From Lepidodermella squamata (taxonomy: Eukaryota > Animalia > Gastrotricha), in assembly GCA_047495785.1 (NCBI GenBank), contig JBLDXI010000032.1:2542001-2606000 (forward strand): a DNA stretch of 64,000 nucleotides, read 5' to 3'. Shown here one piece after another: positions 6,753-36,168 of this stretch. The notes beneath the pieces were generated by a model that ran no database searches, was not told the DNA's origin, and saw only the letters and a list, made by a program, of their open reading frames with translations. The first letter of the stretch is position 1. Every line of letters starts with the position of its first letter. Position numbers and translations under genes: made by a program.

Positions 6753-7576
6753 TTCAGGTCGAAACGATCATGAGTTTTTTGTGATGTCGCTCCCTCAGCT
6801 AAATGTAACGTAACAGATATTCTAAATTTGAAATAAAATCAACATAGACTGCTTATTTGTTCACTCAGAATATCCATTTTCTTTTTTATTCGCCCGATAT
6901 ATACGGATGGGCCGATGCTTGATTATATGAAAGCATATAACGCATAAACGTTGTTTTTATACACCGGATTGGCAAGAATTATCCGACATGAAACCATAAA
7001 AAAAAACTAAATTTCAAGCGGATTTCAAAGAAATATGCCGCCTTTGAAGCGTACCGCAACGTAGTCTTATTTTGTTCAATATTTTGTTGCGATATATTCT
7101 AAAAAGGAGGTTTCATGGTAGATAATTCTCGGCAACATTATTGAGTTTTTATGACTTGCATTTCGTCGAGGTGTAAACATATATATTTGTTACGTAGACA
7201 TACCATCGGTATCAAAATTTGAATTTATACTACATGTTTATCAATATATGAAAACAAAGATTAGACATCATAACAAAGACTGGATGTTCAACAACCCATT
7301 GATAACACAGTTTCGAAGAGTTCGAAGTATTGGTATATAATATATTCATCTCATAGCAGACATTATCTCACAGGGGCTAATCGATAGACTGATTCGAAAC
7401 AAATTAAGCATATTTATCGGATTTGAATAGTCAGTGTTGAACGGAAGACACTTTTATGCAAGACCCTGGGTAGGAAAATTCGAACTGAGCAGTTTCTGTT
7501 GCTTTTGAGCAATTCCGTCATCGCCACCAGAAGACTAAAATTGACAAATAATTCGTTATGATCATGAATCGCAACC

Positions 7577-10330: not shown

Positions 10331-10819
10331 TCACTTTTCTTCACACCACTCGTTTTCCTTGCGGATCTGCTCTTCTTCTTGGGGTGTGAAATCGTTCTTA
10401 ATGTTGAAAGTTTTACGAATGTCCTCCGGGGTTTTGCCCTTGATCATGTTGGCAACAGTTTTGCAGCATACGTCCAGCAGACCCTTGATATCCAAATAGT
10501 TCGCAGCTAAAATCAATTCAAATAGAGTTCCTTGGTCAACTTTCAGAAATTCTTGGTCCCAAACTGGAATGTCATCTGTGCGTTTCTCTTTGTTCATGTC
10601 ATCTTCTGCCAGGGGCGGGTCGTCCTTGTGATTAGTGCACCACTGGATAACCTTTTTCAAGGTAGCCGAGTTAACATTTTGAAGAGGAACGGGCTCGTCA
10701 TCTTCTTCAGCAACATGAAGATCCTCCAGCATAGTCTTGATTGTAACAGATAAACGCACAACATCACGGTCGACAGAAATAACATCACCATCGGCACTCT
10801 GCAATTTGATATTCGGCAT
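10331..10819 (-). CDS. SKP1: S-phase kinase-associated protein 1 (SCF adaptor)
   Basis: Closely matches metazoan Skp1: MPNIKLQS...[39 protein letters not shown]...ENEWCEEK; intronless CDS. Confidence 0.98.
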
Positions 10820-17189: not shown

Positions 17190-19197
17190 ATGCAAAACTT
17201 TTCTGGAGCTATATTAATTACTGATTTGGACGACTTCATCAGGCCCTCACAGGAATGTATAAAGCCAGTTGTGGTTGAGAAGAAACCCCCTGGCCGAGGT
17301 CGGGCGCCTCGTAAAATCGAAATTGACCAAGAAAGTGGATCAGTCAGTCAAGTGGAAACTGGATTATCGAGCAATGCTGAAAAATTTCAGTTGAAAAAAG
17401 TTCAAATCACGTTGAGCGATTGCCTAGCTTGTTCTGGCTGTGTTACATCAGCGGAAAGTTTCCTCGTCAATCAGCAATCGGTCGACGAAGTTGTGAATCG
17501 GCTTAAATCTCGCAGCAGTTGTCATACACAACTTTTCGTAGCTTCGATCAGCACTCAAAGCTATGTTTCTTACGCTGCTAGGCTTTCAATACCGCTCGAA
17601 GTTTGCGCTCGTCGTTTAAACGCCGCATTGAGGCGGATTGGATTTGACATAATTTTGGACATTGGAGTCGCTCGATCAATTTCACTGATCGCGTCTTGTC
17701 AGGAATACAGTGATTTTTATAAGAATTCGGGTAGGAAATTGCCGATTTTTGCAAGTTCTTGTCCTGGCTGGATTTGCTATGCAGAGAAAACGGCGGGTGA
17801 TTTTATTTTGCCTCATATAAGCCGAGTTAAAAGCCCTCAGCAAGTTATGGGTGTTTTGGTGAAGAATTTCCTGGCTAAACATCACCGTTTTGCGCCAGAT
17901 GATGTCTATCATCTATCTGTTATGCCTTGTTATGACAAGAAATTGGAGGCTAGTCGACAGGAATTTACGGTCGAGAATTCGGAAACGCGTCACGTTGATA
18001 GCGTTTTGACATCGGGAGAAATCGGACAACTTCTGGAGCAAATGGGCGTTGTGTTCGATGCGAGTTTTACCGACGAGTCGGACTTTGACCTGCCTGTTGT
18101 TGAAGGCAAGCAACATTCACCTTTAATGCATTTCGGAAGCGGCAGCGGAGGATTTGCAGAGCATATTTTACGCTATGCTGCTCGTGAAGCTGGCATTTCC
18201 GAGGATAATCTCTTTGTGAAGCGGAAAAATATTCGGAATGAAGATATGCAAGAGGTATCCGAGCATGATATGCATTTGACCTTATCAGACACTTTCACTG
18301 GAAATTTTAAATTATGTACCACTGAAATGGGATAAAAAACACATTACTAATTTTGAGAAAGGGAAAAGAAGGCAAAACTTTGATTTGAGACCAAACGATC
18401 CCGTGTTGCTACTCAAGCTACTTCCTTCTGTCGGAAGCATTTCACGACTGAGGCTAAATTAAAATGCATAGAAGCAGAATTGAGAGGAAGGAAATAGGAA
18501 GTTCTGAAATTTGTTCACATCTCGCTATTGATTATCGGTCCTACATCAGACTAAGCGAACTCAAATTTTGAATTCTGAAATTCCTAGCCATCAGAAAATG
18601 TTCTTTGCTGTTTTTTGCTGTTGGAATTGGACCTGATTAATGCATTTTAGTGTGTGCAATCTTGACCCGTATTTCTTACACAATTTTCAGCAAAACCCCC
18701 TCCCTAATCAAATTTTAATTGCGTCTTGAAATTTGAGCTCATTTTATTTTTTACTCTCTGCTAATTAACTATTTTTTCTTTCTCAGCTGTCAATTGAAGG
18801 GTTTCCTGTGAAATTTGCGATAGCGAATGGTTTTCGCAATATTCAGAACATTGTTCACAAATTGAAAACTTCCGCATCGACGTTTCCATGGTCTTACATA
18901 GAAATCATGGCATGTCCCACTGGCTGTGTTGGTGGAGGCGGCCAGTTGCCAGTTTCATCGACGCCAGGCGATAGCAGCGGGTCTCAATTCCGAGCGAATC
19001 GAGAAATTGTCAGCAAAATGAAGAAAATATTCTACGAAGACGTTGAGTCCAGCGGTGAGATTAAAAAGCTATGGGCTTGGGAAGAAAACCTAGGAATGGC
19101 CGTGTTTGAATTGCTCAAAAGAGACAATAATTTGGATATTCTTTTCACTGATTATAAAGCTGTTGAAAAGACTGTCACGACTGCCTTAAAATGGTAG
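17190..19197 (+). CDS. CIAO3: Cytosolic Fe-S assembly component 3 (Nar1/NARFL, Fe-only hydrogenase-like)
   Basis: DLDDFIRPSQECIKPV, ITLSDCLACSGCVTSAE, SSCPGWICYAEK, VMPCYDKKLEASR; intron 18255-18786; FAIANGFRNIQN, IEIMACPTGCVGGGGQ, C-terminal Trp. Confidence 0.95.
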
Positions 19198-19284: not shown

Positions 19285-20694
19285 ATGGAAACTATTACCA
19301 TCAACGGCGCAAATTTGTGGCATCAGCTAAAAAATTCGCATAGAAATGATGAAATTTCGCCGACAAGATGGCAAGACTGGTTGGCAGTTTGGGTGGCTAA
19401 AGCGATTGAATTTTGCGGCAGCGAAGCCTCATCTGCGTGGCTCACGTTTCAAGTTGGCGTTGCAGGCTTCGAAAAGGGTGATTTTCCACTCCGCCTTGTC
19501 GACGCGAGTCTGCATGGCGGCGAGGAAGCATTGCTATGTGGGCCATACTGTCAAACCCTGATCGTGAGCCACGTTCTAGTCGGAGCTCTCCTCGCCAGGC
19601 AGAGTGAATTGCAGAGCTACGACTTGGGTCTTGAGGTCTTGCTATGGTGTGCGACCAGTTACTGCAAAAATGACATTCTCTGCCTGTGCCTACGCGAGGT
19701 TACTCAACGAATTTCAATACCATGTGCCATTCTTTCATCGCTTTTAATCCGCGCGATCGAACTCGACGTTCCAGATCTAGTTGCCACTCTACTTTTATAC
19801 GGAGCTAGCGCGAAGGGTTACGCATCCGATAATCCGACTGGGTCCGACTGCATCCCACAGACTTTACCGCCTCTTCTCGTCGCTCTAAATCTTTCATCTC
19901 GATCGACTGGCCTTGTGCCTCTAATTTCTGGCTCGATTAATCTCGAAATTGTCTCATTGCTCCTGAGCTATGGCGCAGATCCTATCGCTGATGTCGGCTC
20001 TGGACTCGTTCCGCTTCATTGCCTTACAATGATTGCGGTTAGAAGCCCTGGTGTGGCGGAATTATTGCTGCAAAAAACGCCGATTTCCGCGTACGATTTT
20101 CTGGCTGATTCGAAATTCGTTCTCCCCAATGCCAGTCCGTTGGCTATGGCCATTTGCGACGCTTGCATGGTTCGGCGATCGCAACGTACCGCTAGGCTGG
20201 TTCGAATGTTCTCTTTCGCGCTCAACCCCCTGCTACGGCTTGGTGCTCCAGCGAAACCGGACTTCGTCGAGGAATCATGGCCGTTTTTCCTCGAAATGGC
20301 TGAATTGAATGCAATTGCCTCTAAATCCCTGACGATTTGGGGTCGAACGAACGTGATTGCTCATTTCGTTATCGAAGCACGCCGCAAGGGTTCTTTGAAT
20401 GTCCAAGCCCTTCTGCAAAGCGCGTCTCAAGCCTCTGTTTCGCCGTACAACAACTCACCCGAAGTTATCGATCAATTTACGACGTTTGTTCGTTCGCAAT
20501 ATCCTCGTTCCCTTCAAGCCATGTGTCGTCTTGCTATTCTACGCCAACTGCCTGTTGGCTCGCAGCGTCTCAACGCGATTAACTCGCTCGGTCTACCGCA
20601 GTGCGTGGGTGACTTTCTAAATTACAAGGAATTCGACGTTCTCCCACGCGCGATGATGACTTTCTTGAGTAGTGCGAAGCGTCGACGTGTTTGA
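19285..20694 (+). CDS. Diverged ankyrin-like/SOCS-box (ASB-like) protein A1 (long type)
   Basis: Ankyrin-like LVATLLLYGA, IVSLLLSYGADP; C-terminal SOCS box YPRSLQAMCRLAILRQLP...INSLGLPQCVGDFLNY. Confidence 0.82.
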   Translation: METITINGANLWHQLKNSHRNDEISPTRWQDWLAVWVAKAIEFCGSEASSAWLTFQVGVAGFEKGDFPLRLVDASLHGGEEALLCGPYCQTLIVSHVLVGALLARQSELQSYDLGLEVLLWCATSYCKNDILCLCLREVTQRISIPCAILSSLLIRAIELDVPDLVATLLLYGASAKGYASDNPTGSDCIPQTLPPLLVALNLSSRSTGLVPLISGSINLEIVSLLLSYGADPIADVGSGLVPLHCLTMIAVRSPGVAELLLQKTPISAYDFLADSKFVLPNASPLAMAICDACMVRRSQRTARLVRMFSFALNPLLRLGAPAKPDFVEESWPFFLEMAELNAIASKSLTIWGRTNVIAHFVIEARRKGSLNVQALLQSASQASVSPYNNSPEVIDQFTTFVRSQYPRSLQAMCRLAILRQLPVGSQRLNAINSLGLPQCVGDFLNYKEFDVLPRAMMTFLSSAKRRRV

Positions 20695-20891
20695 TGGCTA
20701 TTTTCAAATGTGATGACCGATACTTCTAATTATTTGTTGCTGTAAAACGAATATACCTACTCATCCGGTTACTACGCTATTCGCGTGGTGTGGCCACCTC
20801 ACGCGGTTTCAATTGAGTACGCAGCTAAACTGCTATCTATTCTCTCGTCGAGTAGTGATTATCAGTAGATTTGCTATTATTTTTACCTATC

Positions 20892-21759
20892 TTAACCCTC
20901 TAAGTCCGGCGGGTGTATGTGTAAGTCGCTTGGTGTTTTGGAAAGTTGCAAAAAAATGACAAAAATGTGTGTTACTATTGTAACTTTTAAAATTGCTTGT
21001 GTTAACACAAGTCTTAAAATATTTTCAACAATTTTTTTCATTTTGACCAAAAATGCCATTTTTACATGTCGAAACACAAGTGATTCGATAGATTGCCGAA
21101 TTTTTGGCTTGTCGAAACACAAGTGATCCATGAAGGTGATTGACAAAACTTTGATTTATCGATCAGGGTTAGTTGATAAATCAGTGGAACCTTGATAAAC
21201 CGGCTGGTATTACAGTTACTCACCCTAACTACGACCTATTGGCCCATGAAAATCTATATCGAATCGATGGCAATCGAATTTATCGGAATTGGGCCGACAA
21301 AATCACTTGATAACTTCTTTATCAAATGAAAAGTGGCTGTCACAAGGGTGCGTAAGCACCAGATGTTGCTGACAACACATTTATAAGCAGAGCTGCGCAA
21401 CTCAATTTGGGGCCTTAAAAACAGTGATTAAATGGATCGCATGTGTTTCCGCATGTAAATTGGTTTCCAAAACACGTTCGTGTGTTCGAATGGCAATCAG
21501 AGCGACAAAAAAATGCCCCACATCGTGTGTGCACACATAATGGTACATGTGTTTCGACGAGTTTAAGAGGCGAGGGACATTCACCTAATTACTGTGTTGC
21601 GTAATCGCACGTTGTGGACGCGCCCGCCTGGGTGCTGAAAGCTCAGGTAAGGGGCTCAACCGTGGTATAAAAATTGTTAGCCGAAAATTAATAAGCAATC
21701 CACACCTACGCCGAGAAGTTGCAATTGACGAAAACCCATAGTCGGACTTAGAGGGTTAA
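20892..21759. mobile_element. Non-autonomous piggyBac-type element (MITE-like), 860 bp plus TTAA target-site duplications
   Basis: TTAA (20892-20895), perfect 13-bp TIR CCCTCTAAGTCCG (20896-20908) and CGGACTTAGAGGG (21743-21755), TTAA (21756-21759). Internal repeats of TGTCGAAACACA; no transposase ORF. Confidence 0.88.
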
Positions 21760-22287
21760 TAAATTAACCCTCACGCTGATGAAAATTGTTGTGCGTAGCA
21801 TGTGTATTTTAATCAAGAGATCCGCCTAGCAAAATCTCAAAATTGAAATTATTCGGTGAAGTGCACTTGAGTTATGCAATATTTTTTCGTTTCACGTTTG
21901 ATTTTTCGCGATTAATTTTGTATTGACCTGATTTCTGATTGAATGTAACTAGCGGTTTGATGATAATTAATATTATTGGTTCCGCGAAATCTTGATCTCT
22001 CTTGTGCCGGCGGTCTGATATCTGATTGAATTTTAAATGCATTCAAAAATTCATTATTAGGACACATAAATGCTTGTTTTTTCTACCTTCTAAATTCTTT
22101 TCTGAAGAATTTGAAATGAAATTTGATCAAATCATCGTAATGTAATTCATTTTTTAGATTTTAGGCGCGCTTTAATTTTATGAATGAAATGACTCCGTGC
22201 GGCATGCGCAAGCGAGGCGGATGTTTTAAAGCATGAGGTGTCGAGTTTCTTCTTCTCGTTTCCGCGTGGTTGTGGTTATTGATCGCG

Positions 22288-23052
22288 ATGTCTCAACGTC
22301 ACTTGGGCGAGTATTCGCGTTACGAATTCATTCAAGCAATCCGACGTGGCAATCTCTCAGCTGTTCAAGCTCTTTTCAACAAATACGGTCGCCACATTCT
22401 GGAACCTTTGTACCTATCTGATTGCTGTGCTGGCTTTCTTTACCCGATTGTCGAAGCTATTCATGCCCCTTCTAATGCGGGTGAAATAGTTCGATTTCTA
22501 GTCGAAAATGGGGCTGACCTTCAAACTTGTCGATTCGACGAATCTCCGTCCTTATTTCATGGGATATTATGGTTTACGCTACGATTTCCTGAAGGTGCGC
22601 TCAAGTTTGTTCGCTCTTTAACTGCCTCTTCATTTCTTGAAACTGCAATTTTCGACGGAATTTTGAGGGAGCTTTTGCGTATTGGGGACATTCCAAAGTT
22701 GGAAGTCATTTTGAAATTCCTTCTTGTTCCACTTCTTCGCTGTGGTGCTTTTGTAAGTCCTGATTTATTGTACAAATCTCACATTTTTAACCAGCTAGTC
22801 GAGTTAGATCGGGATATCGCAATTTTGACCAAGAAATCTGCCTTGTTAATGCAAATTTTTGTTCAGGCCACATGGGCGCTTGACTCGCCCTATCCGATTG
22901 TCTTCAAGCTTCGCTCACTTCAGAACAATTGCCGCGTTGTGATTTTACGTAATTTGTCCCCGGGTTTTGACTCACGTTTTCGTGCTATAAATTCTTTCAA
23001 TATACCGTTTTGCTTAATTGATTATCTCAATTTTACTGATCTCGATATTTGA
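22288..23052 (+). CDS. ASB-like protein A2 (short; possibly 5'-disrupted)
   Basis: AIRRGNLSAVQAL, IVRFLVENGADL, LVPLLRCGA, SOCS box LRSLQNNCRVVILRNL...INSFNIPFCLIDYLNF. An upstream in-frame ATG at 22180 is separated by TGA at 22234. Confidence 0.72.
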   Translation: MSQRHLGEYSRYEFIQAIRRGNLSAVQALFNKYGRHILEPLYLSDCCAGFLYPIVEAIHAPSNAGEIVRFLVENGADLQTCRFDESPSLFHGILWFTLRFPEGALKFVRSLTASSFLETAIFDGILRELLRIGDIPKLEVILKFLLVPLLRCGAFVSPDLLYKSHIFNQLVELDRDIAILTKKSALLMQIFVQATWALDSPYPIVFKLRSLQNNCRVVILRNLSPGFDSRFRAINSFNIPFCLIDYLNFTDLDI

Positions 23053-23133
23053 CACTATTTATTGTGATAAAAATATCGGCCCATAAAAATTCATGTCAAA
23101 TTTTGCTTTTCATAGATGGTTATTTAGTCATAA

Positions 23134-24165
23134 ATGGCGTCGGATTTAGAGTTGCAGCTAATTTCGGCGTTGGATGACTCGGATGTTGACGCCTTGGCAT
23201 GTCGCCTGCACCTAGCGTCATCTTCCGGCGCTAAGCTGACTCAAGATCTGCTTTCTACCATGCTCACCGAAGCCATTCGACGCAGTGATAACGCATCGGT
23301 TTCGCTTCTAATCGAAGAATTCGGCGCCAAACCTGACCCGTTTCGTCAAGTCGATGGTCGATGGGTTTACCCACTCCGTGAAGCGATTATTGCCATGGAA
23401 AATGCGTCGTCCTTCGTTGGTGGTAGACCGCGGTCGAGTCACCCGAAAGCAGTTAAAATTGTTCGATTTCTCCTCGGCTTCAAATCAGCCACCTTAATTC
23501 GCCGAGATGATGACGCTAACAAGCTAACCCAGCTTGACTGTTTATTCGCGCTTGCCGCAAACCACCCTGAACTTTGCCATACAATTTTGCCAAATGTCCC
23601 ATCTTCGAGTATCAATTGCTTTCAAAGTGAAGTTTCACCGCTCAGGTCGGTATTTGGTAGATTTCAGTTATACGGCGGGGCCGAAATCCAGATTCCATTT
23701 GTTCGCAGAATTTTCACTAGTGTGATAATTCCGTTTCTAAAAGCCGGGGCTCGCTTGAAGCCTGATGTGTTTTATCCTCGAAACTCTGAATTTGATGAAT
23801 TTGCTCATTACGCGTTTTTGGAAGAGCTTGTTCGCCTCGATTTGTCAAGCAGTTGTGCAATATGGTTCAGGCCTAATGTTGTTACATCGATTTTGCTGGA
23901 GGCACGTGGGCGGTCTGATATTCCGATGATAGATTTGCAAAGGGTCTTTCTCAAAACTGATTACATCAACCGACAGTGTTCCAATAATTTCGCCTCTTTC
24001 CTGCGCCAGCAATTTCCGCGCTCGCTTCAATGCCTCGCCCGTAGTGCCATTCTTCGATACATGCCGCTAGGTTTGGACAAGCGAAGCCGGGCTATCAACG
24101 AACTTTCGCTGCCTCAACGTCTTTCTTCATTTCTTTTGTTCGAAGAATTCGATATCGCAGAGTGA
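23134..24165 (+). CDS. ASB-like protein A3
   Basis: AIRRSDNASVSLLIEEFGAKP, IIPFLKAGA, WFRPNV, SOCS box FPRSLQCLARSAILRYMP...INELSLPQRLSSFLLF. Confidence 0.82.
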   Translation: MASDLELQLISALDDSDVDALACRLHLASSSGAKLTQDLLSTMLTEAIRRSDNASVSLLIEEFGAKPDPFRQVDGRWVYPLREAIIAMENASSFVGGRPRSSHPKAVKIVRFLLGFKSATLIRRDDDANKLTQLDCLFALAANHPELCHTILPNVPSSSINCFQSEVSPLRSVFGRFQLYGGAEIQIPFVRRIFTSVIIPFLKAGARLKPDVFYPRNSEFDEFAHYAFLEELVRLDLSSSCAIWFRPNVVTSILLEARGRSDIPMIDLQRVFLKTDYINRQCSNNFASFLRQQFPRSLQCLARSAILRYMPLGLDKRSRAINELSLPQRLSSFLLFEEFDIAE

Positions 24166-24369
24166 CTACCTAAGCTTTATAATATAAATTGAATCACAAC
24201 ACCTGGAATAATATTATTGTATAATTCTGCGCACGTTTTATCGGGTTTTTGTTCTGACTTGTTTTTCTGAAGAAAAGTGGTTTTGGATATGTTTAATAAT
24301 TCCTTTGTAATTTCTATTTTAGGGAGGTTTTAGTTGAAAAAGTATATTTTTATTTTAAATTATTTATTA

Positions 24370-25716
24370 ATGAATATTCAATCAACGTCGAGTTCGCCTG
24401 AAAATTCGCCGAAATGCCTTAATATATACGACTGGATTTTTTCGATTTTCCTTGAAGCGAACGGGTCTTTCGACCAAGTTTCGCTGCATTTCGACTACGA
24501 CTTCCCTCAGCGCTTCATCGCAGAACCGCCCTTTCCGCTCCTCGACCCGGCGCCTCTCGCCAACAACAACAACCATGGCAATAACGGCCGGCGTCGAGTT
24601 ATGCTGTACGGTTCGAAACGAACTCTCACCACGGTTTGCTATCAGATGGTTCAAATTCTATTGCAACGGAAGCAACAAGCGTGGCAAGACGTCGAACTTG
24701 AGTTTCTACTCTGGTGTGCCGTCAGTTCATCGGACGCGGAAACTCTGAATCTGTGCCTGAAAGTTACGCGGGAAACTGAGCAATGTTTATCAGCCGGCCT
24801 TTTATCGTCGCTCTTAGGTCGCGCCCTCGAGTTGTTTTTCCTCGATGGCGTCAAACTTCTTCTAAGCTACGGGGCCGATCCGAATAAATCGATTTTAAAG
24901 ATCTCGGAGTTGCATAATAGCCTATTTCTGAACACCTCGTTCGTCGATAAAACCCTAACCGAGATGACGTTGATGTTCATGAAATTCGGTGCAGATCCAT
25001 TAACCCGCGGCTTGTCCGGGCAAATCATGTTGCACGATCTTGGCCGATTGGTTTTACACGCGGCCGATTGCGCGGCTCTGGTGATGAAATCTACCCCGGC
25101 GAGTGGCTACAATATGATGACTGAGCGGCAAAGTAACCAAGTGCCAGCGTTATCGCCCCTCGCCGCCGCGTTTCACAGCGCTAGTTGGTCGCCACAGAAC
25201 CAACGAAGCGCGCGATTGGCGCGCATTTTTTCGTTTGCCGTCATTCCTCTACTACGATGTGGTGCTAGACTTTTACCCGACCCGCTCGATTCTCACGAGG
25301 TGCCGCCGTTTCTCTTCCTACCCGAACTTCACGCTGCTGTTATGGAATGTTACGCATTATGGGGCGCACGTTTTGGGCCCTATGCGTTTGCGCTTATTGC
25401 GCTAGAAGCGCGACAAAAAATGTCGCTGGACGTGGCTCGGCTGGCTAGGCTTGAAGCCGCGTTGTTAGCGACACCGAATTCAGCTGACCCGTCTTTCCAC
25501 GCGCGCGTTCGAGACCTGTGCACTTTCATTCGATCGCAGTACCCGCGCTCGCTGCAAGCCATGTGCCGGCATGCAATTCATCGCCACCTGCCCGTTGGCC
25601 AGGAACGGCTGGGTGCTATCAAGTCGCTTGGCTTACCGCCTTGCTTGGACAATTATCTCACCTTTCGCGAATTTGACATCTTACCTGAGGCTTTGGTTGC
25701 CGAAATCGACCAATAA
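24370..25716 (+). CDS. ASB-like protein A4 (long type, closest to A1)
   Basis: LEFLLWCA, VKLLLSYGADPN, VIPLLRCGA, SOCS box YPRSLQAMCRHAIHRHLP...IKSLGLPPCLDNYLTF. Confidence 0.82.
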   Translation: MNIQSTSSSPENSPKCLNIYDWIFSIFLEANGSFDQVSLHFDYDFPQRFIAEPPFPLLDPAPLANNNNHGNNGRRRVMLYGSKRTLTTVCYQMVQILLQRKQQAWQDVELEFLLWCAVSSSDAETLNLCLKVTRETEQCLSAGLLSSLLGRALELFFLDGVKLLLSYGADPNKSILKISELHNSLFLNTSFVDKTLTEMTLMFMKFGADPLTRGLSGQIMLHDLGRLVLHAADCAALVMKSTPASGYNMMTERQSNQVPALSPLAAAFHSASWSPQNQRSARLARIFSFAVIPLLRCGARLLPDPLDSHEVPPFLFLPELHAAVMECYALWGARFGPYAFALIALEARQKMSLDVARLARLEAALLATPNSADPSFHARVRDLCTFIRSQYPRSLQAMCRHAIHRHLPVGQERLGAIKSLGLPPCLDNYLTFREFDILPEALVAEIDQ

Positions 25717-26580
25717 ATGACCTAATAATTGACTTAACACGTTTCATGTTGTTTGAATTGATGGGTGGGAGTTACAACTGTCAGTTTTTGGAAAAAAAAT
25801 CCCAATAGCTTCTTATTATAATTATCGCAAGGAAATCTATCGCGTGCTCTGCTTGCAATCTTTCTCCCATGTTATACTTCTCTACCTCCATATGGCGTCA
25901 ACCTATGCGTCTGTTCACCTGTAATGCTCATTGAACCTTCGTATATCTATAATAATTTATTCAATCAATTCTATGGTGTTTTGGTAAAACTTTATTAATT
26001 TATAAAATTGTTGATGAAAACGCGAAACACTGCCGCCTAAATGTGACCTGAAATTGATAGAGAAGAATTCTATTTGTTGTTGTGCACACTTTTTTCTTTT
26101 TCACTTTTTAAATCATGCAAAGTGCCGAACGTTCTTTATTCTCGGTTTAATATTTCAAATTGCCGACTTTTCAAAACCGTGAAGTGTCGTTATATCTTGT
26201 TGAAATTGTGAGATGTACGTTGAAATTCATTTGTAATATAATCAAAGGGAGAGATCTTTTCAATAACTTTTATTCGATCAGAAAAAAATCTATTTAAACC
26301 GATCTAACTGCCCTCGGTTTCGGATTTTTATCAATCGCATTTGCCTGCCTGATTTTTTTATATTGAAACAAATTTGTGCATTTTATGTTCATTTTGAACA
26401 CTTTTATTTGTACTCTTTTTAGCTGTATATAATGCATCATCATCGTATTCGTTTATGTTTTATTAGCACTGGTGGTGTATTTAAATGCAGAAATATCCGG
26501 ATTCGAAAAAAAGCGAAAAGAAATTAAAAATGCCTCCTTAATAATTTTACAATATTTTTTTTTTATTTTAGATTTTTATT

Positions 26581-27573
26581 ATGGCGTTATGTTCGGCGTT
26601 TCTGGTACGAACTTTACGGAAAGGTGACGTAGGTGCTTTTGCATCTCGATTTCGTCTCGCATTGTCCATTGGCGATTCATTTTCGGACATGTGTCTCTCT
26701 TTTTTACTCACTTCCGCGATAGAGCGCGGATGCGTCGGCGCCGTTCGCTTGTTGTTGTCGGAATTCGGCGCAGATCCGACTCGCTCTTACACTACTTACA
26801 ATGGTACAACAGTGTATCCGCTGACGGAAACTCTGCGTTCCGCAAAATTTTCGCGTGGGCACTTCGTGATGGGCGGCGACGGAAGATGCCGAACCGTCAC
26901 GTGCGAAATCATTCGTTTACTACTTGAAGCAGGGGCTATGGAAAAGTGGCCTCAAACGGGGGATTTCAAACTCATTTTATGGACCTACCTCTTTGAGAGC
27001 GTAAAACACGCGCCTGATGCAGTTGCTTTAATTATAGCATCTGCACCTCCTAGCTTTTATTTGAGCCAGTCGTCATCTGAAGATCAATTTTCTCCCATCG
27101 ATCATTTACTTCAAAATTACTTGAACCCCGTCAAGTCGAGAGAAAATTTCCTCGACTTTGCCACGCTAGTTGACTTTATCATCGTGCCTTTTCTTCGTCA
27201 AGGCGCCGGGCTGCGCGTTCTCGATCGTTATTACATGTTAAAAGTCTTGAAATTCGACGTATCTTACGCAGCCGTGATGGCTAGCAGAGCGCGCCCTAAC
27301 CTTGCCAGTAGCATCGTTGTCGAAGCTAGCTGGACTACCTCGTTCAAGTCCAAATTACTGAAGACTTCGTTAGTTTCGAACCGCCTTTTTGCCGAGTTTT
27401 TACGCTGTCACTTCCCGCGTTCGTTGCAGTCGGCGTGTCGAACCGCCATCCTGCGCCGCCTTCCGCCGGGTCGAGACCGATTGCAAGCAATCGCTAGCCT
27501 CGAACTGCCGGCTTGTCTTTCCAGCTACCTTAATTTTTCCGATTTGTGCATTTACTTCGACTGTCAAACCTGA
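26581..27573 (+). CDS. ASB-like protein A5
   Basis: AIERGCVGAVRLLLSEFGADP, IIRLLLEAGA, IVPFLRQGA, SOCS box FPRSLQSACRTAILRRLP...IASLELPACLSSYLNF. Confidence 0.82.
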   Translation: MALCSAFLVRTLRKGDVGAFASRFRLALSIGDSFSDMCLSFLLTSAIERGCVGAVRLLLSEFGADPTRSYTTYNGTTVYPLTETLRSAKFSRGHFVMGGDGRCRTVTCEIIRLLLEAGAMEKWPQTGDFKLILWTYLFESVKHAPDAVALIIASAPPSFYLSQSSSEDQFSPIDHLLQNYLNPVKSRENFLDFATLVDFIIVPFLRQGAGLRVLDRYYMLKVLKFDVSYAAVMASRARPNLASSIVVEASWTTSFKSKLLKTSLVSNRLFAEFLRCHFPRSLQSACRTAILRRLPPGRDRLQAIASLELPACLSSYLNFSDLCIYFDCQT

Positions 27574-28050
27574 GAAATAACACAACAGTTTTTTAAACAG
27601 TTTCACACTCGATACTGTCAAATTTATTTTCAGATCATGGAGTTGAAGGTTTCTCTGGGGATGCACAATTACCTTTGTTTTCAATAAAATCGTTATGTTT
27701 GCTTGTTAAAAACTTGACAATTGGATTTCCGAAATTAACCGTTTTATCTACATTTTCTTTACACTGAACGCGGAATATCATTGAATTATTGATTTCGTTA
27801 ATAATTTCTTAGTTACTGGTTGGTCTGATTTGGGTTGAATTCACTAGAGATCTCAGATCTCAGAGAGGGATTAGTTATGTACCAATCGATAAATTACGAT
27901 TCGTCTCGAGTTACGCCGGTTGGGTCATTGAAGTAGTTGCGACGGAGGCCGACGAACAGAGCTTGCATGCTGCGAGTTTTTACTATTTTTCCACATTTTT
28001 ACGAATTTTAGGGTCCGAAATTTTACCAGTTCTGCTTCGCTGGCCGGATA

Positions 28051-29112
28051 ATGTCGGAATCGCTGGAAAAAGAGTTAATGACCGCACTCGGCAGCGACAA
28101 TCCAGTCAGATTCGATCACTGCCTCCGAGCTGTTCTCAGCGTGAGAAATGGTGACATGACCCGCTTTCTCTCGGAGCTGCTGATTCAAGCGATTCGACGC
28201 GGCAATGTTCGTATTGTACGTCATTTATTGGAGGTGTTTCGCGTCCCGGCAGTCAGGATTATCAACTACCCTGTGAAAGATGCCCTCGCTCCCTATAACC
28301 CATTAACTGAAGCTTTGACTCACAGCCGCATCGCTACTTACGGTATTGACGATTCTTCTGGTAAACGAGTGACCGCTGTTGGTGAAATTTTGCGTCTTCT
28401 CTTTCTTTATGGAGCGAAGTTCGAAAATTGTTGTGATCATTACCATTCCTGTCCACTTTATGATTACGTCTTCAAGTTGGCTAACGATGCCCCAGATGCG
28501 GCTATTGTTCTTCTAAGCTCATCGCCGATTTGGATCCACAAATCGCGGTTCGGTCAATCATTTTCTCCTTTGGACCATTTCCTGTTCACTACTCTGCATA
28601 ATCTCACGAAGGTCCGTCAATGGGAGGCAGAATTTTCAAATAATCTCGCGAAATGTCGTAATATTCTCAAATATGCTGTACTGCCACTTATTCGCTTGGG
28701 GGCTGGAATTCGCAGTTCTTTCTCCAAAACATTGGACAACTTGCTGGCTTTTGATTCACGTTTTAGTTCAGCAGTCTGGAACAGGTATGAATTGATTCGA
28801 CAGAACTGCTAAAAATCTAGCTTCATCATCTCTGATTTTCTCAGGCCGGATATGCTGTTTCGGATGTTCTGCGAAGTTTTACGGATGTCTCCCTTTGATG
28901 GCAATAAAGAGAATTACGTTTTTTCGTCTCTGGTTTACAATCGCTTTCGACATTTGCGATTTGACTACCCTCGACCGCTGCAACATCGATGTCGAACAGC
29001 TATATTGCGACGCCTTCCGGCAGGGCCTAATCGAATTTCTGCCATCAAGTCGCTGAAACTACCCGCTTGCCTTACTGAATTTCTCAATTTTTCTGACTAT
29101 GAAATCGAGTGA
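28051..29112 (+). CDS. ASB-like protein A6 (one 60-nt intron 28785-28844)
   Basis: Two ORFs joined by a GT-AG intron restore the family motif WNR|PDM. VLPLIRLGA; SOCS box YPRPLQHRCRTAILRRLP...IKSLKLPACLTEFLNF. Confidence 0.8.
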
Positions 29113-29286
29113 AGAAACACTGCTGTGCTCAATTTTGCTACTTACAACATTTTATCATCAAGTTCTGTTTTGGCTCAGATTTGATAATTTTTATACGCTG
29201 TTTACAATATATTTCAATTTTACATTCCACATCATTAAATTTTACTTGATTTTAATTTACACTTTTATATTTAGGCGCATTAATTT

Positions 29287-30597
29287 ATGACGTCTTGTCA
29301 ACATGGCTCGAAAACGCAAGAAAATTCGACTGAAATTCAGCGCCGTGTTTTTGTGAATTTTGACGCAGCAACAGCTCGGCGCCTTGGCCTTGACATCGAT
29401 TTACTGCTAGCCGTAATAAGCGACTCGATACGATCAGCAGGCTTGCAAGACAGCGCCATCCAAGTTGAATTGAAGCGCCTTTTTTCGTCTACGCACCTTT
29501 TCCTCGGTTTTCCGAATTTTGTACTTGCTGACCCTTTTTACCACAATGGTTACACACTAGCTTTGAGGGCTGATTCGAATAATGATGTTTTGATCAAGGT
29601 ATTTCGAGAAATTGCGGCTCAATTGAGCTGCGAATGCTCATGCTACGAACCTATCGCCTCCTTAAAAATATTACTATGGTCGTCGGTGTGTCTTGCGGAC
29701 TACAAGAATATACTGCATTGCCTTGAGTTGGCTCTAGATCTAGAGCAGTTTGATGCTATAGCAACTACCTCCCTTCTGGTGTACGCGATTCAAGTGGCTG
29801 ATTTGAAAATGCTCAGGCTCCTGCTGGAATTTAACGTGTCTCCTAATTGTCAAAGCAAGTATTTCCCCCAACCTTTAATGCAGGCCGCCAGATTGGGCTC
29901 AATGTCGACGTTGGTTCGCAACCATAATCATTCAGACAAAATTTTTGCGAAAATTACGCGTCTACTCCTTAAATTCGGCGCGAATCCTTCGTTAAAATCA
30001 GTTCATGGCTCGCTACCAGTTCACTGCTTGTTTTCGCTGGCTATCAAAGGGCCTAGTGTTGGCGCTATTCTAATTGCTAAAAGTGACCCTGCAGCTTTTG
30101 ACGAGTTGAGTAATGAATTTTCAGATCGAAATAGCCACATCAACGCGTTGGCGAAATGTTTTTACGCAATATCAGTTTCGAGAAATCACGATAACGTGAT
30201 GAAAATTCTACGAAATGCAGTCATACCGCAAATACAGCTGGGTGCAAAGATGATCCCGGATGGTCTGAATGACTGGTTTTTGATTCGCGGGCTCGCTAAA
30301 CTAAACGAGCCTGTTGTTTTGACTGCTTTTATCGCAGCTAGGCAATCGTCTAGCATGAAAAGCAGTATACTTATCGGCTATTCGAAATTTGAAAATCAAG
30401 GCTCGGAAGTCGATAGATTTATTAAGCGGTTGCGTGCTGAATTTCCTCGAAACTTACAAGCTATTTGCCGTGTGGCAATTTTGAAGCACCTCCAGCGTGG
30501 CGTTACTGCTAGACCTATGGCCATTGATTCGCTCGGTTTGCCTGATTGTTTGATGAGATATCTTAAATTTGGTGACATTACCTCGGTGATTGATTGA
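29287..30597 (+). CDS. ASB-like protein A7 (long type)
   Basis: LKILLWSS, LRLLLEFNVSPN, RLLLKFGANP, VIPQIQLGA, SOCS box FPRNLQAICRVAILKHL...IDSLGLPDCLMRYLKF. Confidence 0.82.
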   Translation: MTSCQHGSKTQENSTEIQRRVFVNFDAATARRLGLDIDLLLAVISDSIRSAGLQDSAIQVELKRLFSSTHLFLGFPNFVLADPFYHNGYTLALRADSNNDVLIKVFREIAAQLSCECSCYEPIASLKILLWSSVCLADYKNILHCLELALDLEQFDAIATTSLLVYAIQVADLKMLRLLLEFNVSPNCQSKYFPQPLMQAARLGSMSTLVRNHNHSDKIFAKITRLLLKFGANPSLKSVHGSLPVHCLFSLAIKGPSVGAILIAKSDPAAFDELSNEFSDRNSHINALAKCFYAISVSRNHDNVMKILRNAVIPQIQLGAKMIPDGLNDWFLIRGLAKLNEPVVLTAFIAARQSSSMKSSILIGYSKFENQGSEVDRFIKRLRAEFPRNLQAICRVAILKHLQRGVTARPMAIDSLGLPDCLMRYLKFGDITSVID

Positions 30598-30733
30598 TTG
30601 GTTTTCTTTATATAATCCCGGTGAAAAGATCTATTTTATCTTTATTTTACTGAAGTTTTTGTGCCTCTTTTTGACTAAAAATATACCTATTGGTTATTTT
30701 CTAATTTTGATTTTTTAGTGTTTTAATAATTAT

Positions 30734-31861
30734 ATGGGAAGCTCGATAAGCTCTCGTCGCGATGATGCTCATTTTCTTGGCATGTGGTCTGCCATTCGAA
30801 ATTACGACGACGACGCTTTACTCGAACTATTGAAGCAACGCCGATCTGAAAAACTCAAATTCGCCATCCGCTCTTGTCTATTACACAGTTCAATAATTCG
30901 CGGCAATCTCGGCGCTATTCGTTTGCTACTTGAGTCAGGATTCGACCTTCAAAAAGCGGCGAGAAATGGATTTTTCCCCATGGCAACCGCCGCTGAGTAT
31001 TCCGTTTTCGGCCCTAGTAGGATGACAAGTGAAATATCAGTTCCAGTTTCTTCAGTTTCGTTAACAACGACCCCAGTTCGATCGACGTGCTACGAGACAA
31101 TGCGGATGTTACTGGACAATGGTGCCAAGATTACCTATACCGTAGAGCCAAATAAATCGAACCCGTTGCGGTTCATTCACAGAATCGCTGTTCAAGCGCC
31201 TGATGCTGCTGAGTTGCTGTTTCAAAATATGACGCCGGAAGAGATGAACGCGAACTGTTGCGACCCGGGTATATCACCCCTCAGCGCGTGTTTTCTCTAC
31301 GTTTGCTTCTACTACAAACACGGCGAAATCGCTGATACACCAAATTTGGCCGCAGTTTTTGGCTCGGCTATTCTACCCCTGCTTCGCTACGGGGCTTTGT
31401 GTAACCCTGATGTTTTTCAAAAAGCGTGGCTTTCTTCTCACATGTTTGCAGCGGCCGCTGAACTGGACGCGGATTGCAGTGTGGCGCTGTGGGGCCGACC
31501 TAATGTGATCACGCAGCTTCTTATTGCCACGCTGAGACGCGGCGATTTTGATTCGTATCGCTTCAGCAATTTGAGTGGTAGTCTGTCAAAACGGGTTGAC
31601 TCGAGCGGGCCAATGCGGAATTTTGTTAGATACGTCAAATCGCAATTTCCTCTCACCCTTCAATCGCTGTGTCGGATTTCGATTTTGCGGAAAATGCCTC
31701 TAGGTTACAAGCGGGTGGAAGCTGTTCGAAGTCTAGGTCTGCCGAAACCTCTGCTGGAATTTTTGTTATTCAAAGAATTCGACCTACCTTTTATACCACC
31801 GACTCCGGCTAATTACCGGCGAAATTCATACGCGTCGCGTACTAATTCAAATTTCGAATAA
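30734..31861 (+). CDS. ASB-like protein A8
   Basis: IIRGNLGAIRLLLESG, MRMLLDNGA, ILPLLRYGA, WGRPNV, SOCS box FPLTLQSLCRISILRKMP...VRSLGLPKPLLEFLLF. N-terminus MGSSIS is myristoylation-like. Confidence 0.82.
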   Translation: MGSSISSRRDDAHFLGMWSAIRNYDDDALLELLKQRRSEKLKFAIRSCLLHSSIIRGNLGAIRLLLESGFDLQKAARNGFFPMATAAEYSVFGPSRMTSEISVPVSSVSLTTTPVRSTCYETMRMLLDNGAKITYTVEPNKSNPLRFIHRIAVQAPDAAELLFQNMTPEEMNANCCDPGISPLSACFLYVCFYYKHGEIADTPNLAAVFGSAILPLLRYGALCNPDVFQKAWLSSHMFAAAAELDADCSVALWGRPNVITQLLIATLRRGDFDSYRFSNLSGSLSKRVDSSGPMRNFVRYVKSQFPLTLQSLCRISILRKMPLGYKRVEAVRSLGLPKPLLEFLLFKEFDLPFIPPTPANYRRNSYASRTNSNFE

Positions 31862-32089
31862 TTTTGCATTAGTTCTTGTTTAGTTCTCGGGCAAGATAGC
31901 TCATTTACAAGCCTTTCCTGATACAATCTGAATTAAATACCACCCGGTTTTATTTTTGTTCAACTTGAAGCAGTCATTTCTCAATGTTACATTGTAATAA
32001 ATATTTGTGATCTCGCGATGAGAAATAGAATTTGAAAAATAAAGAAAATAGTAAACTGTTTGATTTTTTGTTATAGAACTACAATTTAA

Positions 32090-34349
32090 ATGGACACAGC
32101 AGAACTTGTGGTACGGTATTTACGCCCGGAAGGAGGAGATGGTCGTTTACCAGAGTTCCCCATTGTAGTTTCAACGCAGAGTGATGAGTGTCATAAGGTA
32201 AAATTCAGAAGCTTGCACAAAAGGCTAAATTGTCTTATTGCTATCGCACAAAAAAACGTAGTGTCCATTGCAAATTGCTGCTGCAATTCAACCGGATTCA
32301 AATGCGACAATCACAGTTCAGACTAATTTCCCCACAACTATGCAAGTAACATTGGATGGGAAAGAAGTTTGCGAGTATGTAACCACGTAAATTTTCGATC
32401 AAAAAGTGTATGACAGCTGAAATTTTCAGATTGCGATACCATTTCGAAGAAGCTGCTCAGTATAAATTTGTGGTATCAACAAGTGATGGCAACACGACAA
32501 CATGTTCAGAAATGCAAGAAATGGCGTACGACCACGACGCTTACCTGCGTATGTTAAATCTCGATTTCGAGTATCTCATCTCAGTAATCAATACACGTGA
32601 AAATTACTTCGATTCAGCTATTCTGTTCGCTTTCCTCATTTTCATGGGTGCTGGTGTACTGTGGATTATTGGGAAGTGGATTTTTCGAAAATACCATGAC
32701 TCGCTGAAGCACTTTTTCTCATATGATCGACTTGTCCATTCCGTATGCCAGTTTTTCCTCTTAATCTAACGCATTTAAATACGCAAATTCAAGGATTTGG
32801 GTAATCCGGCTACTATTACTAATGCATCGGTTGAATCGGCCGATGCAACGCCGAAGACTGATGCATCGTCGAAAAAGCCTGCGAAAGAAAGGCTTCGGTC
32901 ATTGGACACCTTCCGCGGCCTTTCGTTGGTTGTCATGATTTTCGTGAATTACGGCGGCGGTGGTTACTGGTTTTTCAATCATTCAGCCTGGGATGGTTTG
33001 ACTGTCGCTGATTTAGTTTTTCCATGGTTCGTATGGATCATGGGTGTTGCGGTTGCATTCGCTTATCGCGGACCTCTTCAACGAGGCGAGTCGCGTCTGG
33101 CCATGTTCGCCAAAACTCTTCGAAGAACAATCATCCTATTCGTTTTCGGACTCATAATTAACACGGAAGATTGCGTTTCTGTCGATGTGACCCAACTGCG
33201 AATTATGGGTGTTTTACAACGACTTGCACTGTCCTATTTATTTGTCGCAACATTGGAGATTTTGTTCGGAAAATATGCAATGAAACTGGTAAACAAAGGA
33301 ATTTTTGGTTGCCGAAATAATTTTCATGCACTTTCATTTCAGCCGGAAAATTCGGATACTAGCGCGGGAAAATTGAAAAACTTTCTTTGGGATCTACTCG
33401 GATCAGCTCCGCAGTGGATAGCAATCATTGCGGTTGTCACAGTTCACACGTGCATCACATTTCTCCTTCCAGTACCAGGATGTCCAACGTTAGTATTTCT
33501 ATCAATTTCAAACCGTCTATTTTGTGTTGCATTTTACAGTGGCTATGTTGGACCTGGTGGTCTGGCAGATGATGGGAAAAATTACAATTGCACAGGCGGG
33601 GCCGCTCAACTTGTTGATAAGGCTATTTTGGGCGAAAATCATATGTACCAATATCCGACATGTCGCGAAACTTACAAGACTATTGTGCCTTTTGATCCGG
33701 AGGGTCTTCTTGGCCTGCTCACATCAATCACAATGTGCTACCTTGGCCTACATGTAATTTCAACAGTTTTTAGTAGAATTTTCGAATTATTTTTGCCATT
33801 CAGGCTGGTCGAATTTTAACGCTTTATCCAACTGTCACTGGTAGATTAGGTCGCTGGCTTGGCTGGGCACTCGTTTGGGTATTTTAAATATGATGTTTTC
33901 CGCTTTGAATCCATAAATAATTATAATTATCAGGGGCTTGTTGCTGGCATTCTGTGTGGATTTTCGCAGTTCGATGGCGTTATACCGGTCAATAAAAATC
34001 TTTGGTCACTTTCATTCATTCTGTGCCTATCTTCAATGGCCCTGATTTTGCTGAGCCTTCTCTACGTCGTTTGCGACGTCACCAAATTTTGGTCAGGGGC
34101 TCCGTTTGTGTACCCTGGGATGAACTCGATTGTGATTTACATGAGTCATGAGTTGCTTCACACCAATTTTCCGGTTTCTTGGGCAGTACCGAATACTCAC
34201 GGCCATCAACTGGCTATGTAAGTTTCTGGAATCAAATATGAATGCCTCCCATTTTTCGCTCTTTTACTTGCAGGAATTTGTGGGGCGTGTCATTGTGGAC
34301 AATAGTAGCTGCTCTGATGTACTACTACGACGTATTTATTGCGATTTGA
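32090..34349 (+). CDS. HGSNAT: Heparan-alpha-glucosaminide N-acetyltransferase (multi-exon)
   Basis: RLRSLDTFRGLSLVVMIFVNYGGGGYWFFNHSAWDGLTVADLVFPWFVWIMG, RIMGVLQRLA, VPGCPT|GYVGPGG, FDPEGLLG, IPVNKNLWSLSF, YPGMNSIVIY. Confidence 0.95.
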
Positions 34350-34806
34350 GCCTGTTTTAGCTTTTTTGAACAATCTATCAGTATTGTTGACAATATGGTC
34401 AATCACTTCTTTCATTTTAACCGTGATTTTAACATTTTGATTCTATCTTGATTTTGCACTGGCTGAAAGTCCAATAAAGACGCAGGGAAGTTTACTCAAT
34501 GCTATAGCAAAAAAATCGAAGATTATGCACCGCTGCGAAAAAATGACGGGACCATTGTTGTGCCAATCTTAGGTGCCAATTAGGTGCAGCTATCAATTTT
34601 TTGTCGCCCAGTATCAACTTTTAACGCATTATTTTTTAGCGAACAGTTGAGCGCGGCTGATTGATCCGGTGCCTTCGAAGCAACATTTCTCCCTAGTAAA
34701 TTAACAGATGTTGGCGAATCAGTACAATTTTTCCGCTCCAATTTCGAAAAAGTATCGTTCAGCTGAATCACTCATCTGACATTTTTTTCTGTGATTGAAT
34801 CCCTTC

Positions 34807-36168
34807 ATGGCTGGGTGGCGACCAACGAATTCCAATTTTTACTTGGAAGATATACGATTGGCTATCGAATCTGCTCTATGTCAGTCTTCGGTAAATAATT
34901 TTAGAGATGATGCCATCGGAATGGCTCTAGGAATGGCTTCTGCGATGCCATTATCCATACTCAATAGAGAACTTCACGCCAGATCGGCCGGAAAATTACA
35001 TCCGTATTACGACAGAGAATTTGCTAATTTCACTCACTGTTTTGAGGCCCTCATAAGCGTCATGGAGCAGCGGCAACGTGGCTTGAAAGACGTCGACATC
35101 GATCTAATTTTGTGGTGGTCTCTAAATTTGAGAAAAATTGACATTTTCAGAGCAACAATTTTAGCGGCAAACGAAGTTGGTTTGAAGCCGCCGAAGACAC
35201 TACTGGCAACATTGCTGAATCGCGCTATACGCTCGGGATTTACCGCGGGTGTCCGTTTGTGCGTGGAGTCCGGCGCTGATCCAAATCTACCAGCTAATAC
35301 ATCTCAAGTTACACGGTGTCCTCCTATATATGATGCTCTAATGTGGGCTTTGCCCGTTCATCGATTTCGAGTAGAATATCACGATCGTCCGAGAGGTCGG
35401 TCCACAAGCGCCCAATTCCACATGGTTTATTCTGGAAATTCGGCATCCGAATCAATAGAATCCGATTCAAGATTTGAGATCGTTAAATTGTTACTCGACA
35501 ATGGAGCCGACTTGGCAGCACGTTACTGTTGTTCCAACGATCATTGCGCCGATGGCAGTATAGTGGCCCATCACTTATCGGAGATAGCCATTGCCAATGA
35601 GAAAGTCGCAGATCTTGTCATTGGACGAACACCGCCATGCAGCTATTCTGATTTGTCAAGAGTAGGATTTCAGCGTTGCCAAGCTCATACTCCGCTAGCT
35701 AAGGCATTTTTCAACATTTTCTCTGAATATTGGCCTGACAGTAGCACAACCTCGAAAGTCATGAGATTAGTAGTGCTACCACTACTTCGAATGGGTGCTC
35801 CTTTCAAACCTGACTATTTAGCACCTGAAAACTGTAATTTAATGGCTGAGTTCATTACGTCTGGTGGACTTTTCTGGAAGCCATGGAGGGATTTCCTGAT
35901 GCAAATTTTGATCGAATCCCGGCAATCTAATGCAGCACCAGCGATTAGGAACTTGATTCACAGCACGGACTTCGACGGAAGCTCAAATAAATTATCCAAC
36001 CTCATTATCGAAAGTCGTGCAGGTTTTTTCCCGCGATCACTGCAAGCCCAGTGTCGCACCGTCATTCTTCGTAATCTGGAAATCGGGAAAATCAGAGATC
36101 GCCACATTGACATGCTTAACCTCCCCATTACAATTGGCAATTTCCTGAAATTTTCCGAGCTTGGTTAA
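34807..36168 (+). CDS. ASB-like protein A9 (long type, separated from the array by HGSNAT)
   Basis: IDLILWWS, AIRSGFTAGVRLCVESGADPN, IVKLLLDNGADL, VLPLLRMGA, SOCS box FPRSLQAQCRTVILRNL...IDMLNLPITIGNFLKF. Confidence 0.82.
   Translation: MAGWRPTNSNFYLEDIRLAIESALCQSSVNNFRDDAIGMALGMASAMPLSILNRELHARSAGKLHPYYDREFANFTHCFEALISVMEQRQRGLKDVDIDLILWWSLNLRKIDIFRATILAANEVGLKPPKTLLATLLNRAIRSGFTAGVRLCVESGADPNLPANTSQVTRCPPIYDALMWALPVHRFRVEYHDRPRGRSTSAQFHMVYSGNSASESIESDSRFEIVKLLLDNGADLAARYCCSNDHCADGSIVAHHLSEIAIANEKVADLVIGRTPPCSYSDLSRVGFQRCQAHTPLAKAFFNIFSEYWPDSSTTSKVMRLVVLPLLRMGAPFKPDYLAPENCNLMAEFITSGGLFWKPWRDFLMQILIESRQSNAAPAIRNLIHSTDFDGSSNKLSNLIIESRAGFFPRSLQAQCRTVILRNLEIGKIRDRHIDMLNLPITIGNFLKFSELG

Follow-up and report, generated by a model that had tools for sequence, protein, structure and literature searches.

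Nine tandem ankyrin-like/SOCS-box genes of the gastrotrich Lepidodermella squamata probably encode cullin-5 substrate receptors

The window analysed here is a stretch of 64,000 nucleotides from the gastrotrich Lepidodermella squamata (G000:C32:2542001-2606000; contig JBLDXI010000032.1 of assembly GCA_047495785.1), whose genome comprises 121 Mb in 151 contigs and has very short introns. Bounded by a NARF-like gene (17190-19197) on one side and a thiolase gene (from 37405) on the other, nine genes that we call g1 to g9 lie on the plus strand, with HGSNAT situated between g8 and g9 (Table 1). An earlier reading of the DNA (the original prediction) had described eight consecutive genes, and a ninth beyond HGSNAT, that end in a SOCS box, and scores obtained with the Pfam SOCS_box profile (PF07525, gathering cut-off 23.5 bits) bear this out: all nine genes lie above the cut-off, eight of them directly with 27-44 bits (E values of 4e-6 to 3e-11) and g6 by way of its second exon. 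The reading frames of all nine genes are intact, and the spliced proteins are 254-469 residues long. Note that the frame of g6 seems truncated when it is read unspliced; the early stop arises because a 60-nt GT..AG intron carries an in-frame stop codon, and splicing, which keeps the phase across the intron, restores the motif WNRPD. (The spliced g6 protein entered the alignment and the tree described below, and database searches used the g6 exons or other members of the array.)

Table 1. Genes of the array, with positions counted from the first nucleotide of the window (ORF, open reading frame)
Feature	Position	Strand	Description	Evidence
g1	19285-20694	+	Long form, 469 aa, intronless; SOCS box 20503-20619	ORF; Pfam SOCS_box 39 bits
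g2	22288-23052	+	Short form, 254 aa; SOCS box 22912-23031	Pfam SOCS_box 27.3 bits
g3	23134-24165	+	Short form, 343 aa; SOCS box 24013-24138	Pfam SOCS_box 29.9 bits
g4	24370-25716	+	Long form, 448 aa; SOCS box 25543-25662	Pfam SOCS_box 44 bits; member modelled
g5	26581-27573	+	Short form, 330 aa; SOCS box 27412-27534	Pfam 38.1 bits
g6 exon 1	28051-28784	+	Ankyrin-like part	ORF; cDNA contigs cover exon
g6 intron	28785-28844	+	60 nt, GT..AG, in-frame TAA inside	Sequence; skipped by a cDNA contig of run X2
g6 exon 2	28845-29112	+	SOCS box 28969-29088	SOCS_box 42.3 bits, six-frame genome scan
g7	29287-30597	+	Long form, 436 aa; SOCS box 30442-30567	Pfam SOCS_box 37.7 bits, Ank 21.9 bits
g8	30734-31861	+	Short form, 375 aa; SOCS box 31646-31768	Pfam SOCS_box 34.1 bits; cDNA contigs
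g9	34807-36168	+	Long form, 453 aa, beyond HGSNAT; SOCS box 36028-36150	Pfam SOCS_box 32.3 bits, Ank_3 22.4 bits

The nine paralogues are 23-36% identical to one another overall, and this identity is unevenly distributed, amounting to 50% in the SOCS box and to 19-25% elsewhere. The pattern of the array is far beyond chance, and the idea of a conserved adaptor joined to a divergent recogniser, which had been put forward from the sequence, holds among these paralogues. A motif scan likewise upheld the description of shared internal motifs in proteins that lack TPLH: the motif AIRRG/AIRRS/AIERG/AIRSG was found in g2, g3, g5, g6 and g9, W.R[PT][ND] in g1, g3, g6 and g8, SPL/TPL in six of the nine genes and PLLR.GA in every one of them, and TPLH in none of the nine proteins. 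A SOCS box consists of a BC box, which contacts Elongin C, and a Cul5 box (PMC4812663). In an alignment of 30 sequences (A2), made up of the window genes, paralogues on other contigs and orthologues, all 30 members have a BC box of the form S/T/x-L-Q-x2-C/A/S-R-x2-I/V, which fits [STP]-L-x3-[CSA]-x3-[LIVM], and the Cul5-box stretch L-P-x2-L-x2-[YF]-L is kept. Four residues are invariant across the 30 members, namely L395 and R400 in the BC box and P423 and L430 in the Cul5 box (numbered as in g4).

When the family profile was compared with the sequences of the PDB, it matched ankyrin repeats, both designed and natural (E = 2.6e-28), and human ASB9 (1e-10), ASB8 and ASB7. An AlphaFold model of g4 made with alignment A2 (mean predicted local distance difference score 87, predicted template-modelling score 0.85) has about six or seven stacked helix pairs followed by three short SOCS helices. 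Foldseek placed the crystal structure of ASB9 with Elongin B/C (3zkj) at the top of the matches to this model (E = 9e-4, template-modelling score 0.62 normalised by target), with an identity of 14-16% between g4 and ASB9 in the fold alignment; further matches were ASB8, ASB7, ankyrins and FEM1C. In the array proteins an ankyrin-repeat domain immediately precedes the SOCS box, the arrangement that marks the ASB family. Ahead of the SOCS box, all members also carry a distal helical segment peculiar to the family (W.RPN ... EAR), and the long forms carry an N-terminal extension, for which a search of the ESM Atlas with the extension of g4 gave no usable match. Many long-form members outside the window begin with a conserved H-x(2-4)-C-x(2-5)-C-x-[IL]-S, followed some 60 residues on by [VL]-D-x2-L-H (examples are the paralogues L032 at C7:968k, L036 at C16:948k and L044 at C45:897k, and the metagenome proteins P0002, P0073 and P0126). 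This arrangement could be a small metal-binding cap; the long forms of the window retain only the D-x2-L-H part of the motif pair.

The history of the array could be followed in one related species, known here only from three metagenome contigs (L001, L064 and L065), which carry NARF, eight SOCS-box genes and HGSNAT in that order. The best matches of g1-g8 fall on the diagonal, that is, they are 1:1, collinear orthologues, with identities from g1 to g8 of 40, 32, 45, 56, 42, 40, 34 and 60%. Because the orthologues are 1:1 and stand in the same order, the eight-gene row was present in the common ancestor of the two species, and its number and order have been kept since. A tree confirms the orthologue pairs of g1, g3 and g4 with 98-100% support (the g3 pair has 100% in the Shimodaira-Hasegawa-like approximate likelihood ratio test), groups g1 and g4 as sisters and places g8 closer to genes of contig C7 than to the array members beside it. 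For g9 the likely orthologue is P0015, which is 38% identical over its full length and has as neighbours another family member and an ion-channel gene, not HGSNAT. Of the flanking genes, NARF is 58-66% identical to its counterpart in the relative, and HGSNAT in its main pieces about 68-70%. Compared with these housekeeping genes, g4 (52-56% identical to its orthologue P0001) and g8 (58-60% identical to P0006) diverge only slightly faster, and g2 and g7, the fastest-evolving members at 32% and 34%, diverge about twofold faster.

Several differences in gene structure accompany this collinearity. The intron of g6 lies in a gene whose orthologue in the relative is called as a single open frame, and conversely the orthologue of g1 is interrupted by a short intron (L001, about 6828-6872) that g1 does not have. 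The gap of 1.6 kb between g1 and g2, where the relative has about 130 nt, is due to the insertion of an 868-bp repeat at 20892-21760. Copies of this repeat are found on other contigs, several of them 99-100% identical and many 91-94% identical; the repeat is probably a non-autonomous mobile element that was active recently.

Selection was gauged from polymorphism counts rather than from dN/dS between the species because synonymous sites are saturated at protein identities of 32-60%. Between strains of the window's species, g5-g8 show 37 coding differences, 23 synonymous and 14 non-synonymous, giving a ratio of non-synonymous to synonymous polymorphism (pN/pS) of 0.19, a rough value drawn from 40 listed of 82 variants. 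Similarly, the eight genes of the relative show 14 synonymous and 11 non-synonymous differences among samples, from which hand arithmetic gives a pN/pS of about 0.25. Both counts are small and rough, and both point to purifying selection. Comparison of orthologues shows the recognition part to be conserved to about the same degree as the SOCS box; in g4, identity is 72% in the N-terminal extension, 56% in the ankyrin part, 37% in the distal helices and 60% in the SOCS box.

The array belongs to a very large family. A six-frame scan of the 121-Mb genome yielded at least 150 SOCS_box matches above the Pfam cut-off out of 212 candidates, as compared to 18 ASB genes in mammals (PMC4812663), and by manual count about 58 of the listed matches lie on contig C7, including a dense cluster at 2.84-3.07 Mb. 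With the family profile, 285 genomic candidates yielded at least 101 matches, of which many were full length, and all of the 20 paralogue loci that we examined have intact frames with the SOCS box at the end. Two pairs of family members on different contigs are nearly identical (C7:1605755-1606660 with C16:948444-949346, and C10:238530-239543 with C7:967992-969092; branches of about 0.1 in the tree), and each reflects either a recent segmental duplication or haplotypes that were not collapsed.

Beyond this genome, a word-based protein search with g4 returned a single match, the metagenome protein P0001, at 52% identity. In an exhaustive profile search of 1.84 billion representative proteins, the best 150 matches comprised about 26 full-length single-stretch proteins of 285-541 residues, the remainder being giant ankyrin-repeat proteins. 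For 11 of the full-length matches (P0001 and ten others) the source was checked, and all came from ENA metagenome assemblies without names; no orthology to a named gene of the set ASB1-18 was found in these searches. As far as public data go, the family thus appears to be lineage-restricted. Literature searches for published work on an invertebrate SOCS-box expansion or on PF07525 found nothing relevant. These results divide what had originally been predicted, a lineage-specific and rapidly diversifying repertoire. The profile search and genome-wide count proposed at the time confirmed SOCS_box and, with at least 150 copies, a very large, lineage-restricted family, but rapid diversification was not supported in view of the collinear orthologues and the pN/pS values of about 0.19 and 0.25. 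Nor was the expected rapid gain and loss of genes between related species seen, with only g9 standing in a different neighbourhood.

Transcription was assessed with one cDNA data set (run X2), available as contigs, which gives no expression levels. The contigs behave as cDNA in that two GT..AG introns are skipped, and one contig omits exactly the 60 nt of the g6 intron. Contigs from this ordinary cDNA library cover g5-g8, and these genes are therefore transcribed. The g6 transcript is polyadenylated at about 29255, with ATTAAA at 29234, and the poly(A) tail of the contig is not encoded in the genome. The g5 contig starts at 26570, within the acceptor AG at 26570-26571, and is preceded by a leader ending in ...ATTTGATTTGTGTCTA; in the g7 cDNA a leader ending in ...CGAATTTGATTTGTGTCTA precedes 29273, the first position of the acceptor AG at 29273-29274. 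The same foreign leader, ...CGAATTTGATTTGTGTCTA, is found on the g5 and g7 contigs, in each case directly at an AG acceptor 10-14 nt upstream of the ATG. Followed by an AG/GT donor, this leader occurs in 46 copies in the genome and in none in a reversed control; most copies sit in tandem units of about 0.7 kb (for example L026, G000:C17:1136489-1139511). These copies are spliced-leader RNA genes. (A comparison of the gene unit with Rfam matched no family, and a likeness of the leader to that of Oikopleura dioica (bioRxiv 10.1101/353979) was set aside as weak, with 4% of shuffles scoring equally.) No more than 18 nt separate the poly(A) site of g6 from the trans-splice acceptor of g7, an operon-like arrangement of the two genes. 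Spacing is tight along much of the row, with 87 nt between the NARF stop and the g1 start, 81 nt between g2 and g3 and 136 nt between g7 and g8 (several gaps are 81-204 nt), and acceptor-like sites lie upstream of most of the other array genes.

The genome also encodes the cullin with which such proteins would be expected to work. A Cullin scan combined with comparison to PDB sequences distinguished five cullin types: Cul4 on contig C13, Cul1 on C9, Cul3 on C42, a Cul2-like gene on C25 and Cul5 on C38. The gene on C38 is a clear Cul5 orthologue (E = 4.8e-65 to human CUL5 versus 1e-26 to CUL1), and that on C25 (L010, G000:C25:1484744-1487219) is very divergent, its best relatives in the PDB being Cul2 (E = 2e-23). 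A zf-rbx1 scan of the genome for Rbx2 gave 33 RING matches.

We consider it likely that the nine genes encode ASB-type substrate receptors of cullin-5, each with a conserved target of its own, that go back to old tandem duplication within a lineage-specific expansion. The proteins consist of a degenerate ankyrin solenoid, the family-specific distal helices and a canonical C-terminal SOCS box, to which the long forms add their N-terminal extension. The SOCS box would dock on Elongin B/C and on cullin-5/Rbx2, the repeat surface would bind a substrate, and the bound substrate would then be ubiquitinated; here, binding to Elongin B/C and cullin-5 is inferred from homology, and ligase activity and substrates are presumed. 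Each paralogue would have a target of its own that stays the same over evolution. The row goes back to tandem duplications that preceded the split from the relative; since then its gene number and order have been kept, and it is under purifying selection.

Several observations weigh against this reading. In a Cul5 box an LPxP core precedes x2-hydrophobic-x2-[YF]-[LI], and the second proline of that core is present only in a few members, such as g4 and g8, which makes the choice of cullin uncertain, and the divergent cullin-2-like gene coexists with the cullin-5 orthologue. The ankyrin repeats of single sequences score mostly below the Pfam cut-offs. Elongin C was not located: a six-frame Skp1_POZ scan of the genome gave two Skp1 genes and nothing else, and no convincing genomic locus came from three short degenerate patterns based on conserved Elongin C motifs, although an exon-by-exon scan of this kind easily misses an intron-split gene of about 110 residues, so that the miss is no evidence of absence. 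(One candidate for Elongin C, L023, was similar by eye and was rejected since it has stops and its longest piece has no PDB match at E values up to 10. As to Skp1, an intronless gene lies in the window itself at 10331-10819 on the minus strand, with a near-identical, intron-bearing copy at G000:C20:2438981-2439229; the intronless copy may be a retrocopy.) Given that the missing proline helps to select cullin-5, and that SOCS1, with an incomplete Cul5 box, provides a precedent in which Cul5 binding was not detected (PMC4812663), the SOCS boxes might be used otherwise, either docking on cullin-2, for which the gene on C25 would be a partner, or binding Elongin B/C only, in proteins that act as regulators or decoys or secure their own stability and are not substrate receptors. 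We regard this as quite unlikely, as the rest of the Cul5 box (L-P-x2-L-x2-[YF]-L) shows strong conservation, the genome retains a good orthologue of cullin-5 and the closest structural neighbours are ASB proteins.

The original prediction had gone on to propose a candidate intracellular, ubiquitin-based defence system. On this view the array would be part of a germline-encoded repertoire of receptors for a cullin-5 RING ligase (CRL5) whose variable repeats would send foreign proteins, from viruses, parasites or symbionts, to the proteasome. A large and clustered family (at least 150 SOCS boxes and 101 family-profile matches) that is apparently confined to this lineage would suit such a role, as would an adaptor kept among paralogues while the other parts diverged, and the array orthologues do diverge faster (32-60% identity) than the neighbouring genes (58-70%). 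However, no positive evidence for defence emerged, inasmuch as the orthologues are collinear with g1-g8 unchanged in number and order, orthologues conserve the recognition part to the same degree as the SOCS box, variants are mainly synonymous in both species and transcripts are present in an ordinary cDNA library; moreover, a Pfam scan found no known immune domain in the nine proteins. We therefore think a defence role unlikely. The very low identity of the paralogues, the in-frame stop in unspliced g6 and the recent insertion of the 868-bp repeat might also suggest that the array is a decaying remnant of pseudogenes or neutrally drifting copies, but with nine intact frames (the g6 stop being removed by splicing), orthologues retained in the relative, a pN/pS of about 0.2 and genes that are transcribed, trans-spliced and polyadenylated, decay is very improbable indeed.

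The array proteins resemble the vertebrate ASB proteins both in plan, with an ankyrin solenoid at the N-terminal and a SOCS box at the C-terminal end, and in expected mechanism as CRL5 substrate receptors. They differ in being orthologous to no ASB, in their degenerate repeats without TPLH, in the distal helical segment and in the N-terminal extension of the long forms, and their genes differ in having almost no introns, in their tandem arrangement and in trans-splicing. In nematodes and plants, the expanded F-box and MATH-BTB genes likewise join a conserved cullin-docking motif to divergent recognition domains, in hundreds of clustered, lineage-restricted copies with rapid turnover. As compared to these F-box/Cul1 and BTB/Cul3 expansions, the array would use a SOCS box and Cul5, and it is stable in number and order between the two species and under purifying selection overall. 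The combination of an ankyrin recogniser with a short C-terminal cullin-adaptor motif is also shared with FEM1 (ankyrin repeats and a VHL-box, a Cul2 receptor), of which FEM1C was among the fold matches, and with poxvirus ankyrin/PRANC proteins (ankyrin repeats and an F-box-like end); by Pfam, the C-terminal motif of the array proteins is, in contrast, a bona fide SOCS box. The array genes are not viral, as indicated by the spliceosomal intron, the spliced leader and the conserved synteny with housekeeping genes.

Both in architecture and in presumed mechanism these proteins follow a known family. The novelty lies in a subfamily that lacks named relatives, in the extent of that subfamily in so small a genome and in the operon-like arrangement and trans-splicing of its genes. 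The locus documents both spliced-leader trans-splicing and operon-like packing in this genome. Were the defence role true after all, the family would give the animal a layer of innate immunity based on SOCS boxes, much as has been suggested for the F-box expansions of nematodes. An ankyrin/SOCS-box design that forms a modest family in vertebrates here numbers well over a hundred copies, in a genome that is small and compact, and the age, collinearity and constraint of at least this array speak for a large number of fixed and specific targets of degradation and against a repertoire shaped by an arms race. Nine related receptors with their orthologues would provide a clean set for asking what purpose such expansions serve.

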